64,000 bases of DNA from the sequence record OU509535.1. The stretch is one strand, 5' to 3'. The translations under genes were made by a program, and so were the position numbers. Shown in pieces: positions 2,765 through 38,802 of the stretch (position 1 is the stretch's first letter; the number at the start of each line of letters is the position of its first letter). The notes beneath the pieces are model-generated. The model was given only the letters and a program-made list of their open reading frames with translations. It made no database searches and was not told the DNA's origin.

Positions 2765-4099
2765 ATGTCTAAAGCTGATCAAAACGATATCCTGAACGTA
2801 ACTCTGACCCCAAAGAAAGCAAAAATGGCAATTGCTATTGCTGATAAAATCCAAGATTCTCTGATGATTTGGGGTTCCCCTGGTATCGGTAAATCTGCTA
2901 TCGCACGTCAGTACGCTGATGAACAGTACCCGCTGCGTAAGGATAATGTTGGTAAACTCGAATTCATGCGTCAACAAGTTGAAGTTGCCGATGATTCCGA
3001 AAAAGCACAACTGCAACGCGAACTGGAAGCATTTGAAGCCAAACTGATTGACCAGGATTCAAACTTCATCGACTTCCGCCTGTCACAAATTGAACCATCT
3101 GATCTCCGTGGTATTCCAGTACCAGAGAAAGTATATAAAGATGATAAAGGTAATATTCTGGCTGAATCTGACCTGGATCAAGTTAATAACTACATCGCAG
3201 AAACTGCTGTTGTGTGGGCTGCACCAAAAGTACTGAAACTTCCAGAAGACTGGAAAGGTGTTATCCTGTTTGATGAGATTAACTCTGCTATGCCAATTGT
3301 ACAGGCTGCGTCTTATCAGCTAATTCTCGACCGCTGTGTTGGAGAAATGAAACTACCGAAGACCGCTATGGTACTTGCAGCAGGGAACCGCGAAACTGAT
3401 GGTGGTGTAACATTCGCACTGGCGACCCCACTGCGTGACCGTATGACCCATATTGAGATGGTACCATATCATCAGGATTGGATTGACGATTACGCAATTA
3501 GTAAGCGTGTTAACCCAGCAACTGTTGCGTTTATCAACAACACTGGTGCTAAGTACTTTAACACACTGTCGCCAAATGATCCGTCTCATAGTGGTGGTAC
3601 CTCTCCACGTTCATGGGAAACCGTAGCTCGCTACGAAGATCTGAAAAAACAGGGTGCGATTGATAAAGAAGTTTTCCGTGCACTGATTGCTGGTCGTGTT
3701 GGTGATGGTATTGCAACCGAGTACATCGAATATGTCGAAAACGTATCTAAACTACCAGATACCATGGCTATTCTGAATGGTGAGATTACCGAAATGGACT
3801 CTTCACTGGATATTTCAGCGAACTACTTTGTTTCACTGAACCTGGTGTATAAGATCATCGATCTGTACTCAGAAAAACAGGCTAAACGCCTGTCTGACAA
3901 AGAGTGGGGTCGTCTGGTGAACAATTTCATCCTGTTCCTGGATCACAACTTCAGTAACTGTCAAGATGAACTGTCTGTAATGGCGATTCGTACAATCACC
4001 AAAGCAAACGTCACTGTGAAATTTGCTGATGCTCCAGCGTTCCGTGACTTTGTTAAGAAGTATGAACAACTGGTTCGTGCAGCACGCTCTCTTGGTTAA
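2765..4099 (+). CDS. MoxR-like AAA+ ATPase
   Basis: Walker A WGSPGIGKS, Walker B ILFDEIN, LAAGN sensor, LRDRM arginine finger and SPRSW. Start moved to ATG 2765, which has an AAGGA SD. Confidence 0.9.
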   Translation: MSKADQNDILNVTLTPKKAKMAIAIADKIQDSLMIWGSPGIGKSAIARQYADEQYPLRKDNVGKLEFMRQQVEVADDSEKAQLQRELEAFEAKLIDQDSNFIDFRLSQIEPSDLRGIPVPEKVYKDDKGNILAESDLDQVNNYIAETAVVWAAPKVLKLPEDWKGVILFDEINSAMPIVQAASYQLILDRCVGEMKLPKTAMVLAAGNRETDGGVTFALATPLRDRMTHIEMVPYHQDWIDDYAISKRVNPATVAFINNTGAKYFNTLSPNDPSHSGGTSPRSWETVARYEDLKKQGAIDKEVFRALIAGRVGDGIATEYIEYVENVSKLPDTMAILNGEITEMDSSLDISANYFVSLNLVYKIIDLYSEKQAKRLSDKEWGRLVNNFILFLDHNFSNCQDELSVMAIRTITKANVTVKFADAPAFRDFVKKYEQLVRAARSLG

Positions 4100-4123
4100 T
4101 AAAAAGTTGAAATAGTACTTTAC

Positions 4124-4155
4124 AATAAGGATACCAAATGGTATCCTTATTTTTA
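4124..4155 (+). terminator. intrinsic terminator between AAA and vWA genes
   Basis: AATAAGGATACC-AAAT-GGTATCCTTATT hairpin followed by a T run. Confidence 0.7.
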
Positions 4156-6844: not shown

Positions 6845-7421
6845 ACTTGATTCTTGGATCAGGTGTCAGACTAATACATTTTATAGTGGCGGAGCAGCAG
6901 GTGCTGACCGCCTTTTTACTTTATATGCAATTGAAAACGGTTTTGAATGTATCAATTTCTCTTTCAGTAAACATGTACATTATGTACCAGAAGAAACTGT
7001 ACTGAGAATACCAGCAGATATATTAGGTGACAATGAAATATATAATGAATTAGTTAGAGCATCCAGAAATTTATCGAAGAAAGTCCCACAAAAAAATACA
7101 TACGTATATAACTTATTAGCTCGCAATAGCTATCAAATATTCAATACTGAACGTATATATTGTATTTCTACTTTAGTTTCTCCTAATACAGTTAGTGGTG
7201 GTACATCATGGGCTGTACAAATGTTGATTAATAAAGAAGAACACCCAGAAATATATTTGTACGACTATTATGATAAATGCGTATATTCATACGATTCAGT
7301 ACTGAAACAATTCACTGAAGTATTTTTTGTTCCTACCCCTCATGGAAACTGGACTGGAATAGGATCAAGAAATGCAGAACCAAAACATTTAGAACATTTT
7401 AAAACATTTTTCAAGGATTAA
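6831..7421 (+). CDS. stand-alone SLOG-superfamily nucleotide-binding protein
   Basis: N-terminal SGGAAGAD loop, later SGGTSWAV and TGIGSR motifs. Start at ATG 6831. Confidence 0.7.
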   Translation: MTKNELDSWIRCQTNTFYSGGAAGADRLFTLYAIENGFECINFSFSKHVHYVPEETVLRIPADILGDNEIYNELVRASRNLSKKVPQKNTYVYNLLARNSYQIFNTERIYCISTLVSPNTVSGGTSWAVQMLINKEEHPEIYLYDYYDKCVYSYDSVLKQFTEVFFVPTPHGNWTGIGSRNAEPKHLEHFKTFFKD

Positions 7422-33868: not shown

Positions 33869-34357
33869 TTATGCAGCAGATTCGACGATTTTAGCCATTT
33901 TATCTGCACGAGATGTAGTTTGACGATACCACAGTGAATCACGCATTTGACGTCCTGCTTCTTTATAATCAGCACGACCTAAAGCAGCAAGTGCTTTTTT
34001 GAAGTTAAGCACTTTTGATTTACCCATTTGAAATACCATTAGCCATAGAACACGCTGTACGCTCTCTGGAGCAGTCATACCGAATTGTTGATAGATTGCC
34101 TTAGCATCATTGTATGCTTGTTTAGCGTCCTTCAGGAGCAGTGCATCAGCCTCTTTTTCAGTTAGTCCGTTTTTAAAGTTCTCACCTTTTAAAACCAGAT
34201 GACCATAACCAATAGTATCTAGACCTAAACTGTCTTTGTATACCCAGAATTTGTTATTTTTAAAATAACCAAGTTTAGACTGATACGCGATAGTACCTTC
34301 AAACTCTTTGACTTCAGTAAAAAACTGTTTATCATCACTAGAAATAGACCAGCCCAT
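33869..34357 (-). CDS. GH24 (T4-type) lysozyme/endolysin
   Basis: EFEG...YKDSLGLDTIGYGHL...MVFQMG...DSLWYRQTTSRA. Confidence 0.92.
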   Translation of the reverse strand: MGWSISSDDKQFFTEVKEFEGTIAYQSKLGYFKNNKFWVYKDSLGLDTIGYGHLVLKGENFKNGLTEKEADALLLKDAKQAYNDAKAIYQQFGMTAPESVQRVLWLMVFQMGKSKVLNFKKALAALGRADYKEAGRQMRDSLWYRQTTSRADKMAKIVESAA

Positions 34358-34384
34358 ATTTTTACCTCTTTTACTTAAATTTAC

Positions 34385-34413
34385 TTGACTTTGTATTTAT
34401 ATTAGAGTATATT
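34385..34413 (+). promoter_or_regulatory. sigma70-type promoter for the two-gene island
   Basis: TTGACT-N17-TATATT. Confidence 0.55.
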
Positions 34414-34467
34414 TGTGTAGTAAAAATATTTGAATACTAAAAGTTGTTAATTATTTAAGGTGTTTAA

Positions 34468-34890
34468 ATGAGATATGATGTTATAAATGATGTTAGATCT
34501 GTTTCTGTGGTTAATAAAAAGTACTTCTATAAACCAAAAGGTAAAAACAATAAGAAGTATGAAACCATGATTGATGAATACGGAACAGAAGTGATTTGTA
34601 GTGATGTACCACTTGATTTACCAGAATTATCATATGAATACAATTCTTCAATTGAATACAATGGTGTTGAATTTATTTATAGAACGTATATTCGTGATAA
34701 TTATGAAATAGAAGATGATGTAATATACAGACGTATGACAGATTACACTGAAATGGATGAAGATGAGCTATTCCAGTACTCATTGGTATTCGAGAATGAT
34801 AATTTTTCATTTCATGATGCAGTTAAAATACAAAAATGGTTAATTATGAGATATCGTGTTGTTAATACCACGATTAATGTGGATTTATAA
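34468..34890 (+). CDS. hypothetical protein
   Basis: 140 aa with AAGG SD; antisense to the baseplate operon. Confidence 0.75.
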   Translation: MRYDVINDVRSVSVVNKKYFYKPKGKNNKKYETMIDEYGTEVICSDVPLDLPELSYEYNSSIEYNGVEFIYRTYIRDNYEIEDDVIYRRMTDYTEMDEDELFQYSLVFENDNFSFHDAVKIQKWLIMRYRVVNTTINVDL

Positions 34891-34901
34891 GAGAGATTAT
34901 A

Positions 34902-35360
34902 ATGCCTGGAAAACCAGAGAATATTTATGACAATACAGAATTAACCATTATACTGAAAAATGTAAACAATTACAAGAATCTAAGTCCAGAAGCAAGGGAG
35001 ATATTCAAAGAAACGAATATCAAGTACAAACCGAGCGGTGCTGAAAGACCCTATGATATGGATCATATTTACTATATGATTAGAGTTCTAACTGAGGTGT
35101 CACTTGATTCAGTACGAAAGAGTTTAATTCTAAGGACAGGTGTCGTATTATCTAACAAGTCAATACAAAGATATAAGCGTGTTGTAATAGAAGTATCAAA
35201 AGCATTGTTATGTACACACAGAAATGGTATTGCTTTGCATATCAAAAAAGAAGAAGGAAAACACTATTTGACAGATCAACAAAGTTCCAGATTGAACACT
35301 TTAAGGAAAAAGGGTGTCCCTATTGAGGACATGATAAATTATCTACAGAAACTGCTCTAG
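34902..35360 (+). CDS. basic hypothetical protein, candidate DNA-binding/initiator protein
   Basis: 152 aa, K/R-rich; its stop codon abuts the first 36-bp repeat. Function is inferred from context only. Confidence 0.6.
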   Translation: MPGKPENIYDNTELTIILKNVNNYKNLSPEAREIFKETNIKYKPSGAERPYDMDHIYYMIRVLTEVSLDSVRKSLILRTGVVLSNKSIQRYKRVVIEVSKALLCTHRNGIALHIKKEEGKHYLTDQQSSRLNTLRKKGVPIEDMINYLQKLL

Positions 35361-35479
35361 CCCAGTATTCATGCGGGTTGTAGGAATTAGGGACACCTTT
35401 TTGTGTGTTTTTTTGGTGCAGTGTCCCTAATTCAGACCAAGAACCCAGTATTCATGCGGGTTGTAGGAATTAGGGACAC
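35361..35479. repeat. two perfect 36-bp direct repeats with an inverted half-site between them
   Basis: CCCAGTATTCATGCGGGTTGTAGGAATTAGGGACAC at 35361-35396 and 35444-35479; GTGTCCCTAATTC at 35421-35433. Confidence 0.97.
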
Positions 35480-35775
35480 TCTATTATTAAATTCATACTT
35501 TTTCCTGTCCTTAATTCAATAGGTCGCTACGCTCAAATATTGATCTTCGTCACTCCGTTCCTCGATCAATATTAAAATCGGCAATTTGCGTTTTGTTCTC
35601 GATTCGCAAGCGAACCAATCACAAACCCGCAGCGAATTGCGAATCTCCATTCGGTCAGTCAGCAATACTGCTTTTGGGAGAAAGCAACTCTCGGAGTGAT
35701 GAAAAACGAATTCCATTCTCCTCATGAAAAACCAACGAATAGTCGGTTCTGTTGAATTACTTGAATTATAATTGT

Positions 35776-36082
35776 CTGTATTCACTTCTAAGGAGTTTTA
35801 TACACTTCCTTAGTGGTTCTATGTCTTAAACAAGAAAACACATCAGAATGCGATACAGGAATTCTCGTAGCTATTATCAAAGCAGTTACTATCCATTGTA
35901 ATATCTGCTCCATTAAAAGGACGCCCAATTCAGTACTGAAAAACTTTTGTGAGTAAGTCATTTCAAACTGATTAATTTAAGGACACCCATTCAAATTAGC
36001 TGTATTCACTTCTAAGGAGTTTTATACACTTCCTTAGTGGTTCTATGTCTTAAACAAGAAAACACATCAGAATGCGATACAG
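35776..36082. repeat. two perfect 83-bp direct repeats
   Basis: CTGTATTCACTTCTAAGGAG...GAATGCGATACAG at 35776-35858 and 36000-36082. Confidence 0.97.
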
Positions 36083-36141
36083 AGCGTTTTATGTGGTGTT
36101 ACAGAAATAACAAAAGGAGCACATGGCTCCCTTTGTTATTA

Positions 36142-38802
36142 TTACTGACATGCCTCAAGACGACGTGCCATAAACTCGGCACGTCTTGTTGTTTGTCCAT
36201 ACCATGCAGAGTTGCGAATGTGTGCTGCTGCCAGGCGATAGTTTCCCTGTGCCATGGCACCAAGCATACCAGTAAATTGTTGTACACCCCATTTACCCAT
36301 CTGGAATACCATCTCGACTAGTACAAGTTGAGCCATATATGGGGTTTTCATCTTATAAGATGCATAGATAGAACTGGCATCGTTAATTGCCTTTGTACTA
36401 TCACGAACCAACATTGCATCAGCTTGTTCTTCAGTAATACCTGAACTGAAGTTTTCACCACGTAATACTAGGTGTCCATAACCAATAGTTGGGAACCCTC
36501 TACTATCAGTATAAGTCCAGAATTTATCATTTCTAAAGTACCCTTTTGCTTGTTGATATTGTTTAGTACCTTCAAACTCTTTGAGTTCTGGCATTAATGT
36601 AGAATCACCTGGTTTGATTTGCCAATCCACCGCAGTTTTATCTACTGTACCAATATTCATTTCTTGTGGGGAGTAATTAACCACTGTACTGCTTTTTGAT
36701 GTTCTTGGTCGTCTAACCGGAACATGACGAGACCCACGTTGTGCATAACCAGAACCAATTGTTTGTATCTTGGTACTAACAACCAGTTCATTACTATCAT
36801 TACCAGACACCACCACTGTGTTAGATGATGTTTCTTTGGTAGCTTTACCTTGTATTAGTGTTTTATTTGCACATTCTGAACCCGTACCAGTTTGGGTAGC
36901 ATAGAATAGACCAGGATCTACTGTACCACTAAAACCATATAAATTGGCTGAATCGACGCGAACTTCAAATTTCAAAATACCACTTGCAGTACCAATTTCT
37001 TGTCCTTTTTGTACTACATCTTTACTATACAATGAAGTTTTCAAACCATAAAATACTGATTTATACCCAGAATTATGTACAATATACACTGCATTATTAT
37101 ATATACCAACTGTACCGGCATCAGGTGCAACTACAGTAGAATTACATTGTATTTCCCAGCCATTATGATCTGTTGTACTTCCTTTATTGTCAGTTATATT
37201 TTTACCCCAATACCCGTACTGACGAATAATACCATTACATGGCATTAACATGTGAAGACCTTCATATGTTTGGGAATAACCATTCATACCAGTATCAGTC
37301 ATTAAATCTTGTGTCTGCACTTGAGATGTTTCTGGGGCGTATGAGATGAACTGTACGGCCTCCTGTTGTTGAGCCTGTACCAACTGTGGCTGGACGTCAT
37401 TCGCAGGTTGTGGATGTACTGGTGCCGTAGTTGAACCACTTCCTGAACCATTGTAACCTGTATCTACTGTACTACCATGATTTGATGCATCCTGCCAGTT
37501 TGAAATATTATGAATATGTTCATTAAGTCCTGCATTTGGTGTTTTAAAGTCCGGTGCCATAAATTCAGCAGTACCCTTATTACCTGAAGCATCAACTGTA
37601 AGATTCTGCCCACCACCACTGATATTAGTGGATGAATCACCGATGATGTTAGCAGTTGAACCTTTCATGGAAACATTACTACCAGCAGTCACATCAGTAC
37701 TACTACCGCTTTGTAAACGTAAAGAAGCAGCCGTCACCAATCGTAAATCTGCACCACTATTGATAACTACTTGTCCTTCTATTTTAGAATCCAATGAACC
37801 AAGTAATTCAAGTTTAGTATTACCACTAATACGAGCATTAAGATCCTGTCCAGTTTCTATATTACATGATCTACCAGAAACCATATTAATATCCTGACCA
37901 GCACGAATGTTAATATTTTTATCGCAGTGAATATTAATATCTCCATCACCGGTAAATGATATACGAGCAGTACCATCACGATTGATTAATAAAATATCAC
38001 CAGTTGCCTCAGATAACATCAACTGAGCACCACTACGAGTACGCAAAACAATACCTTCATTGGTTCTTGCTCCCACCCTGGTATCATTCACTGGGTTATT
38101 GAATTGTGTATCCTGATAAGTATCTGGATCATCATCCCATGAAGGAACATTAAGTTCATCATCGGTATATCCATCATCTAGTACAAAACTATTACCCCTT
38201 GGTGTACTCATACCATATACTGTACTAATCATTTGTCTGGTACTACTTCTGTTAGCTACACCAGCTTCTTTGTCGTATAAAAGGTTTTGTTTTTTTAAAC
38301 CTTCAACGATAGGAACATTGACATATTTTTCATTTTGATCAGTACTGATGGTATTTCTGTCATAATCGGTAACTGGTAATGGAGAATCTGTACCACTATA
38401 TTGTGATGTAGTGGAAGTTGCCATACCTGGAACCATTGTGTTCATTCGTTGTTCGTATATACAACCAATCCAGTAAGCTTCATGTGATCTACCCTGAATG
38501 AATATAACAATTACTGGACAGCCTACATCGGGAGGTACCGCCCAGAATCCATAACCTTTTGGATACTGACCGTATGCATCAGCACTCGGTACACCTGGGG
38601 TTTTACCTGCAAATGGAGACATATAAGAACATTCAATCCATGATTTCTTATCGTCTCGTTCACTTTGTGAACCCTGAACCCATACTTTAATTTTACCACT
38701 CATAGTAGGATCTCGGTTGTCCATAACAATCGCTACCTGTGGATAAGCTGGGTCAAAACGACCCAACTGTTCTTTTGCATACTGTTTACTTGTATCTACC
38801 AT
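36142..38802 (-). CDS. gp5: gp5-like central spike: OB-fold, beta-helix, HxH tip, degenerate M23-like domain, C-terminal GH24 lysozyme
   Basis: AIVMDNRDPTMSGKIKVWV (OB fold), 8-residue beta-helix periodicity, EHIH tip, C-terminal YTDSRGFPTIGYGHL...MVFQMG. Confidence 0.85.
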   Translation of the reverse strand: MVDTSKQYAKEQLGRFDPAYPQVAIVMDNRDPTMSGKIKVWVQGSQSERDDKKSWIECSYMSPFAGKTPGVPSADAYGQYPKGYGFWAVPPDVGCPVIVIFIQGRSHEAYWIGCIYEQRMNTMVPGMATSTTSQYSGTDSPLPVTDYDRNTISTDQNEKYVNVPIVEGLKKQNLLYDKEAGVANRSSTRQMISTVYGMSTPRGNSFVLDDGYTDDELNVPSWDDDPDTYQDTQFNNPVNDTRVGARTNEGIVLRTRSGAQLMLSEATGDILLINRDGTARISFTGDGDINIHCDKNINIRAGQDINMVSGRSCNIETGQDLNARISGNTKLELLGSLDSKIEGQVVINSGADLRLVTAASLRLQSGSSTDVTAGSNVSMKGSTANIIGDSSTNISGGGQNLTVDASGNKGTAEFMAPDFKTPNAGLNEHIHNISNWQDASNHGSTVDTGYNGSGSGSTTAPVHPQPANDVQPQLVQAQQQEAVQFISYAPETSQVQTQDLMTDTGMNGYSQTYEGLHMLMPCNGIIRQYGYWGKNITDNKGSTTDHNGWEIQCNSTVVAPDAGTVGIYNNAVYIVHNSGYKSVFYGLKTSLYSKDVVQKGQEIGTASGILKFEVRVDSANLYGFSGTVDPGLFYATQTGTGSECANKTLIQGKATKETSSNTVVVSGNDSNELVVSTKIQTIGSGYAQRGSRHVPVRRPRTSKSSTVVNYSPQEMNIGTVDKTAVDWQIKPGDSTLMPELKEFEGTKQYQQAKGYFRNDKFWTYTDSRGFPTIGYGHLVLRGENFSSGITEEQADAMLVRDSTKAINDASSIYASYKMKTPYMAQLVLVEMVFQMGKWGVQQFTGMLGAMAQGNYRLAAAHIRNSAWYGQTTRRAEFMARRLEACQ

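Follow-up and report, generated by a model that had tools for sequence, protein, structure and literature searches.

Introduction

In SaPI/PICI satellites, the rep-ori module places the origin immediately 3′ of the initiator gene, with two sets of sites flanking an AT-rich stretch. Protein and site specificities are matched within each of these integrase-bearing satellites, and the SaPI Rep is a large helicase-type protein. Plasmids of the R1 and pMV158 type control their copy number with a small repressor that accompanies an initiator and a counter-transcript RNA. PLE, a satellite of Vibrio cholerae, has an initiator, RepA, without helicase and primase, carries its iterons in the noncoding region NCR3, and replicates with a borrowed replisome (PMC7145576). 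In these semi-palindromic iterons, inverted sub-repeats surround a poly-A/T tract (PMC7145576).

Here, we report a previously undescribed three-part cassette consisting of a gene for a basic protein (ORF075), an array of what appear to be the protein’s own sites, and a conserved structured element, linked as a portable unit that a lytic jumbo phage shares with integrative elements. The cassette resembles PLE in several respects: a large serine recombinase integrates PLE (PMC7145576) and most of the cassette-bearing elements, the putative initiator has neither helicase nor primase, the replisome would be borrowed, and both have semi-palindromic repeats with inverted sub-repeats around an A/T tract. 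It differs from PLE in that PLE RepA has a RepA_N fold while ORF075 has no RepA_N or other PDB match, and in that the cassette array follows the gene, overlaps its stop codon, and has a conserved structured element attached. With SaPI/PICI modules the cassette shares sites located 3′ of the gene, an AT stretch, matched specificity, and integrase-bearing carriers; however, ORF075 is only 152 aa long and without an enzymatic motif, and the cassette sites occur in both orientations. The succession of a small upstream gene, a binding-protein gene, and a downstream cis site at five island loci, together with a structured RNA on the opposite strand, recalls R1 and pMV158, yet the cassette shows no homology to those proteins or RNAs, its RNA lies beyond the gene rather than over the leader, and the phage copy lacks the small upstream gene.

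An island inserted between lysozyme and spike genes

The window, i.e., the whole 64,000-nt stretch of record OU509535.1 analyzed here, comes from a RaK2-group Klebsiella jumbo phage (Alcyoneusvirus) with ~98.8% identity to RaK2 and K64-1. The cassette lies in an island found in 8/8 RaK2-group genomes compared, whose plus strand carries ORF074, ORF075, and then a noncoding stretch:

33869–34357, minus strand: stand-alone lysozyme gene, flanking the island
34358–36141, no strand: island (insertion) of 1.8 kb between the lysozyme gene and the gp5-like spike gene
34385–34413, plus strand: promoter-like site upstream of ORF074 (consensus scan, 10/12 matches)
34468–34890, plus strand: ORF074, 140 aa, matching only PHROGs of unknown function
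34902–35360, plus strand: ORF075, 152 aa, pI 9.6, proposed site-binding protein
35361–36141: noncoding stretch of 781 nt
36142–38802, minus strand: gp5-like spike gene, flanking the island

Phage 121Q of E. coli has no such island, and its lysozyme and spike genes are separated by a gap of 36 bp; since these genes abut in 121Q, the 1.8-kb island is an insertion. That it splits the lysozyme from the spike gene, both on the minus strand, had been noticed in a first-pass annotation of this DNA and is confirmed. The same annotation gave the island its own promoter: a plus-strand site with 10/12 consensus matches is present, but such sites are not more numerous than in shuffled sequences. It had further proposed cumulative GC skew as a check for a replication origin, and the skew change at the island merely tracks the coding strand.

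Both island ORFs are intact and nearly invariant across the 8 RaK2-group genomes: ORF074, a 91-aa relative of which is encoded in one enterobacterial island (L014; homologous and comparison loci are numbered in this way), displays 0 variable codons, and ORF075 displays 6, of which 4 are synonymous and 2 non-synonymous. Within the repeat array, 3 of 157 nt vary, and variability among the RaK2 relatives is highest toward the distal end of the noncoding stretch. One 224-bp repeat period of this region is missing from phage Muenster, the expected outcome of recombination between the two copies of a 94-nt direct repeat.

The stand-alone lysozyme (33869–34357, minus) and the C-terminal domain of the spike (36142–38802, minus) are visibly paralogous in their translations, so that the island sits between two related lysozyme-coding stretches. 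In phage 121Q, an HNH endonuclease gene is inserted between gp25-like and gp6-like baseplate genes (L003 5231–5995); together with the RaK2 island, this indicates that the baseplate cluster accepts insertions in both phage groups.

A repeat array begins at the ORF075 stop codon

Directly after the ORF075 stop lies the perfect 36-bp direct repeat reported earlier, with copies that are 100% identical and start 83 bp apart; its first 24 nt occur 2 times in the window versus 0.00 expected. The array and its surroundings are as follows:

35314–35322, minus strand: partial site copy of 9 nt, inside the last ORF075 codons
35361–35396, plus strand: 36-bp repeat, copy 1, with a 13-bp core site at 35384–35396
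35397–35420, no strand: T-rich tract between convergent core sites, as read from the sequence
35421–35433, minus strand: inverted exact copy of the 13-bp core, from repeat and motif scans
35444–35479, plus strand: 36-bp repeat, copy 2, with its core at 35467–35479, the last forward site
35480–35498, no strand: AT-rich box directly 3′ of the last forward site
35505–35517, minus strand: degenerate inverted core copy with 2 mismatches

The 13-bp core GAATTAGGGACAC is exact at 35384 (+), 35467 (+), and 35421–35433 (−), the last as previously claimed. Window-wide, the core has 4 matches with ≤2 mismatches versus 1.1 expected, and all 4 are within 134 bp. The degenerate copies listed in the first-pass annotation fared unevenly: the one placed at 35506–35517 is real, with 2 mismatches and inverted (35505–35517), while the one at 35974–35986 has 3 mismatches and does not rise above chance. 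The copy proposed at the ORF end, with a span of 35314–35324, survives as a 9-nt inverted match at 35314–35322, which belongs to a 15-nt arm 93% complementary to 35388–35402 (inverted repeat I5). The CCC-N11-GGG feature is present as a small hairpin within each 36-mer. The AT box occupies the same position at every homologous locus examined.

ORF075 founds a family of basic proteins without a known domain

The 152-aa basic ORF itself (34902–35360, plus) was correctly called, yet not its “orphan” label: a full HMMER scan yielded 15 distant homologs at 26–37% identity, which were aligned with ORF075 (alignment A1). A word-based search for relatives returned only the phage’s own cluster. A later profile search extended the family to 38 homolog clusters, all named just “hypothetical protein”, from Pantoea, Enterobacter, Serratia, Edwardsiella, Yersinia, Cronobacter, and E. 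coli hosts. The family is mostly basic (pI 8.5–9.8 in 14/16 proteins), and the sole invariant residue of the homolog alignment is N11. Among isolated phages, it is confined to the RaK2 group; no homolog was found in the plasmid collection, and complete E. coli genomes gave no DNA match.

No Pfam domain was detected in ORF075 or any homolog, PHROG searches gave weak matches to families of unknown function only, and a profile search of the PDB with the ORF075 family returned only designed helical repeats. With A1 as input, AlphaFold2 predicted an all-helical ORF075 at a pLDDT of 91.6 (39 from the single sequence). This model had no significant Foldseek neighbor in the PDB (best E = 0.15), and its relatives in BFVD were uncharacterized phage proteins only. 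The suggested check for helix-turn-helix (HTH) or initiator folds thus came back without an initiator family or fold (RepA_N, Rep_3, helicase/primase types). No recognizable DNA-binding domain (HTH, ribbon-helix-helix, winged helix) was detected in ORF075 either, the sole DNA-binding hints being weak POU-like matches (5wc9 and 7u0g, probability 0.08–0.18).

Array position is constant and motif class follows the protein

Every homolog for which downstream sequence is available is followed by 180–860 nt of noncoding DNA with a common layout. The array starts at or over the homolog’s stop codon and comprises 3–8 copies of a locus-specific motif of 9–13 nt, in both orientations, with A/T tracts often separating the site clusters. 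The last forward copy is followed, 0–4 nt on, by an AT-rich box (~16–19 bp and -10-like, after the last site in all loci) and then by the conserved element. Arrays thus occupy the same position at unrelated loci whose proteins are 25–49% identical, while their motifs differ:

L009: AATTAGGGCAAC
L012 and L017: AATTAGGGTAAC
L016: ATTCTGGTAAC
L014: ATTCTCATAAT
L041 and L048: ATAACCGTAAC
L032 and L036: ATCTTGCGAC
L038: CATCTTTCCGAC

Overall, at least 10 motif classes could be distinguished, and the nearest protein relative shares the class in 17/20 cases. The window, L009, and L012 retain a AATTAGGG core despite a protein identity of only 32–39%. Motif class tracks protein relatedness, as would be expected if a DNA-binding protein recognized cognate sites, but not if the repeats were mere terminator hairpins. 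The earlier proposal that the adjacent protein recognizes the repeats as its cognate sites therefore gains support from comparative sequence data, the arrays keeping their position while the motif changes with the protein, and we infer that ORF075 probably binds these sites.

The conserved element and the distal noncoding DNA

Beyond the array, the noncoding stretch of the island includes a conserved element that exists in two forms, type 1 (as in the window) and type 2:

35518–35670, no strand: conserved noncoding element, type 1, from local alignment to L021, L016, and L017
35537–35545 and 35564–35572: arms of a hairpin with a 9-bp stem in the type-1 element
35765–35858, no strand: 94-nt direct repeat, copy 1, in the distal noncoding part
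35989–36082, no strand: 94-nt direct repeat, copy 2, 96% identical to copy 1
36106–36140, no strand: hairpin 3′ of the gp5-like gene (inverted repeat I7), terminator-like and usable on either strand

The type-1 element was recognized by local alignment against shuffles (A2), with z = 15.4, 12.3, and 7.8 for 35518–35670 versus L021, L016, and L017, i.e., loci whose proteins are only 25–33% identical to ORF075; nhmmer searches from three loci did not reach the window’s element. Its hairpin stem differs between loci, with arms that are still complementary. The two strands of type 1 are alike once composition is controlled. None of the RaK2-group SNPs in 35505–35760 are compensatory; the minus strand folds 10–14 kcal/mol better, with similar composition-controlled z-scores.

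Type 2 is the commoner and best-sampled form. A 24-nt type-2 pattern retrieved 19 loci from viral and metagenome collections, and among the 15 loci with at least 700 nt of upstream sequence, 13 encode a homolog ending 224–324 nt upstream. A pattern scan of the genome collection gave chance-level matches only. Read on the strand opposite the gene, type 2 forms two helices with strong covariation. In an alignment fitted to the model, from sequences selected by the 24-nt pattern, 94.5% of cells are paired versus 87.9% in shuffles (0/500 shuffles reach 94.5%), with 19 double-change pairs versus 4.3, and slid controls are 26–58% paired. G-U predominates in at least five pair columns on the opposite strand, columns that would be A-C on the other, and RNAalifold gives −30.6 kcal/mol for the strand opposite the gene versus −12.5 kcal/mol. 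Judged from these patterns, the type-2 element looks like a strand-specific RNA. The type-2 covariance model (R1) has no match in the window; homology of the two types is suggested by their tandem occurrence in L025 and by shared loop and flank motifs seen by eye. Separately, the hairpin of the element is tandemly duplicated in L046, an IS (rve transposase) is inserted into the element at L033 10640–11850, and in the podovirus-like contig L013 the element (3996–4134) precedes the gene pair instead of following it, with its relative orientation retained.

Scans for known RNAs in the window yielded no tRNA and only a sub-threshold, terminator-like sraA match to Rfam 15 covariance models, and Rfam returned nothing relevant for six related loci. 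The hairpin at 36106–36140 is terminator-like by scan and corresponds to an annotated terminator in phage Muenster. Two minus-strand ORFs, ORF076w (35516–35785) and ORF077w (35788–35961), are hypothetical proteins in RaK2/K64-1 and probably not genes: in KP13-7 and phiKp_21, indels shift the reading frame of both, and neither has a family match, and we therefore treated them as noncoding.

Homologs sit at the edge of integrated elements

Outside the phage, the homologs sit 1–3 kb downstream of an integrase gene, at the edge of an inserted Enterobacterales element. The commonest integrase type is a large serine recombinase; an island of Yersinia enterocolitica has a tyrosine integrase instead, with the cassette between the integrase gene and a CI/Cro-like pair. 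HNH genes are frequent neighbors of the homologs, and variable cargo follows downstream, including restriction-like HNH, Mrr/LmuA-like proteins, LeoA/BC-like GTPases, and EAL proteins. In L039 and L025, genes for the terminase small and large subunits, portal, and major head protein follow within 4–9 kb, and no recognizable replication gene lies between them and the cassette. No relaxase or conjugation gene was found in any locus. PIME elements, also considered, are a different kind of island (bioRxiv 10.64898/2026.01.12.698999).

At five loci, a conserved co-oriented gene of 48–62 aa precedes the homolog, sometimes with an HNH gene in between:

L009, 2203–2349: small upstream gene
L013, 4798–4953: small upstream gene
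L014, 4285–4455: small upstream gene
L019, 4685–4873: small upstream gene
L022, 4052–4198: small upstream gene

Its product looks ribbon-helix-helix-like by sequence pattern, has no Pfam match, and has no copy in the window.

This context also bears on two readings offered in the first-pass annotation. A recombinase arm site is disfavored because the att junction of the islands lies beyond the integrase gene, 1–3 kb from the array, and a packaging locus is disfavored because the terminase genes of the islands are kilobases away from the cassette.

A possible origin-type module or regulatory switch

Among the possible roles of the cassette, we tentatively favor an origin-type module, i.e., an iteron array bound by its own origin protein in the manner of phage satellites, since the layout mirrors satellite replicons, the carriers show no other replication gene, and PLE offers a precedent for a small initiator without enzymatic activity. 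In such a module, ORF075 would be a sequence-specific DNA-binding protein with the 13-bp cores as its cognate sites, and the core sites, AT-rich box, and conserved element would act in cis as an origin-type cassette. ORF075 protein would occupy the site clusters on both sides of the A/T-rich stretch directly 3′ of its own gene, and this binding may open the DNA, or mark it, for a replisome provided by host or helper, in parallel to SaPI/PICI rep-ori and PLE RepA; the neighboring structured RNA could act as a primer or control RNA. The replication role is thus one we infer, as is a RaK2 copy that would have been captured from, or be common to, integrative satellite-like or prophage-like Enterobacterales elements.

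Several lines of evidence fit this origin-type module. Its layout is constant in every homolog locus with downstream sequence, the motif class co-varies with the protein (17/20), the element pattern alone finds a homolog upstream (13/15 loci), and the proteins are mostly basic (14/16). The carriers have an integrase (L039 and L025 also terminase, portal, and head genes) and no recognizable replication gene, leaving the cassette as the sole conserved replication candidate in its host elements, and PLE provides a described parallel (PMC7145576). Among the hallmarks of an iteron origin, clustered repeats beside the gene and a site sequence co-varying with the protein are thus present, whereas no known initiator family or fold was detected for ORF075. 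The AT box behind the last site could be an unwinding stretch or, just as well, a -10 box. Orientation and spacing of the sites are also irregular, in contrast to the phased direct iterons of classic origins, a -10-like box directly follows the last site, as it might an operator, and the conserved element resembles an RNA transcribed from the opposite strand. Among RaK2 relatives, the noncoding part varies more than the two ORFs, and the change in GC skew at the island only follows the coding strand. Finally, we know of no need for such an origin in a lytic jumbo phage, which also counts against an origin.

Some of these same features would be accounted for by a regulatory switch, which we regard as possible and nearly as likely, the two roles not being mutually exclusive. 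Here, ORF075 would be a transcription regulator and the array its operator set, possibly controlling a promoter in the AT box and/or blocking or terminating a convergent opposite-strand RNA that controls the element’s genes. The last forward site is 0–4 nt from the -10-like AT box in all motif classes, paired sites in the window yield strong hairpins, with T-runs next to them on both strands, and the small co-oriented gene ahead of the homolog in five loci looks ribbon-helix-helix-like by sequence pattern, with no Pfam match. The RNA-like covariation of type 2 points the same way (94.5% versus 87.9% paired, 19 versus 4.3 double changes), although its alignment was model-fitted and its sequences picked by the 24-nt pattern, as does the wealth of conserved G-U pairs on the opposite strand (RNAalifold, −30.6 versus −12.5 kcal/mol), although the type-1 strands of the window are equal once composition is controlled. 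However, neither an HTH nor another known DNA-binding domain was detected in ORF075, no promoter or terminator is definable for the proposed RNA, and the Yersinia island already holds a CI/Cro-like pair beside the cassette.

Three further explanations appear less probable. F-like oriT regions combine allele-specific sets of accessory protein and sites with a conserved strand-specific core beside them, which counts for a transfer or packaging site, oriT-like or pac/cos-like, with ORF075 as an accessory DNA-binding factor and a hairpin acting in single-stranded DNA. The small, integrase-bearing, cargo-rich islands would suit such a site, which we nonetheless consider unlikely: no locus holds a relaxase or conjugation gene, the terminase genes are 4–9 kb off and come with their own small subunit, the ≥5 G-U-dominated pair columns fit RNA better than DNA hairpins, and occurrence in a lytic jumbo phage speaks against oriT. 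A purely structural origin of the repeats, as long-stem bidirectional terminators or a recent local duplication without protein recognition, would be consistent with a region between convergent genes, with the hairpin formed by arms 35307–35322 and 35388–35402 with T-runs on both strands, and with the plus-strand RNA fold (z = −4.8). It seems improbable given that the core motif is kept in L009, L012, and L017 despite diverged flanks and proteins at ~30–39% identity, that the runs of direct copies in L014 cannot pair, and that motif class follows the protein. The 36-nt repeat length and the two direct copies with an 83-nt period are all that recalls a type III toxin-antitoxin-like repeat RNA or a mini CRISPR-like array, which we deem highly implausible: the repeats are downstream of the gene rather than upstream and include inverted copies, there are only two copies, the relatives repeat just a 9–13-nt core at irregular spacing, and PADLOC, Pfam, and Rfam gave no match.

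Broader reading and shared sequence words

A wider and more doubtful proposal is that the ORF075 family, its matched arrays (at least 10 specificities), and the structured RNA constitute the core replicon or switch of undescribed integrase-bearing Enterobacterales elements, of which RaK2-like phages carry a working copy. If so, some of these elements encode their own capsid and may be satellites, and the RaK2-like copy would be either the phage’s own origin or a means to interact with such elements. The enterobacterial islands with the cassette are unannotated, with “hypothetical protein” throughout, and the cassette could serve as a sequence marker for these cargo-carrying mobile islands, some with defence-like genes. 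It also offers a protein family whose natural DNA specificities are apparently numerous and whose fold, predicted with confidence, is unlike any solved structure, as well as a new structured-RNA candidate backed by covariation. By tying a lytic jumbo phage to integrative elements, it bears on the exchange of replication or control modules between phages and their parasites.

Under the core replicon or switch proposal, the word AGTACT would be a second signal common to phages and islands. AGTACT occurs 119 times in the window versus 23 expected, is nearly absent from the host flanks of the enterobacterial islands, and is also enriched in the 121Q locus (L003) and inside islands (L017, L025, L032, L036). 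For the palindrome CAGTACTG, the window has 29 occurrences versus 0.8 expected, mostly inside genes, for example at positions 7297, 18513, 29091, 35931, 48045, and 56091.
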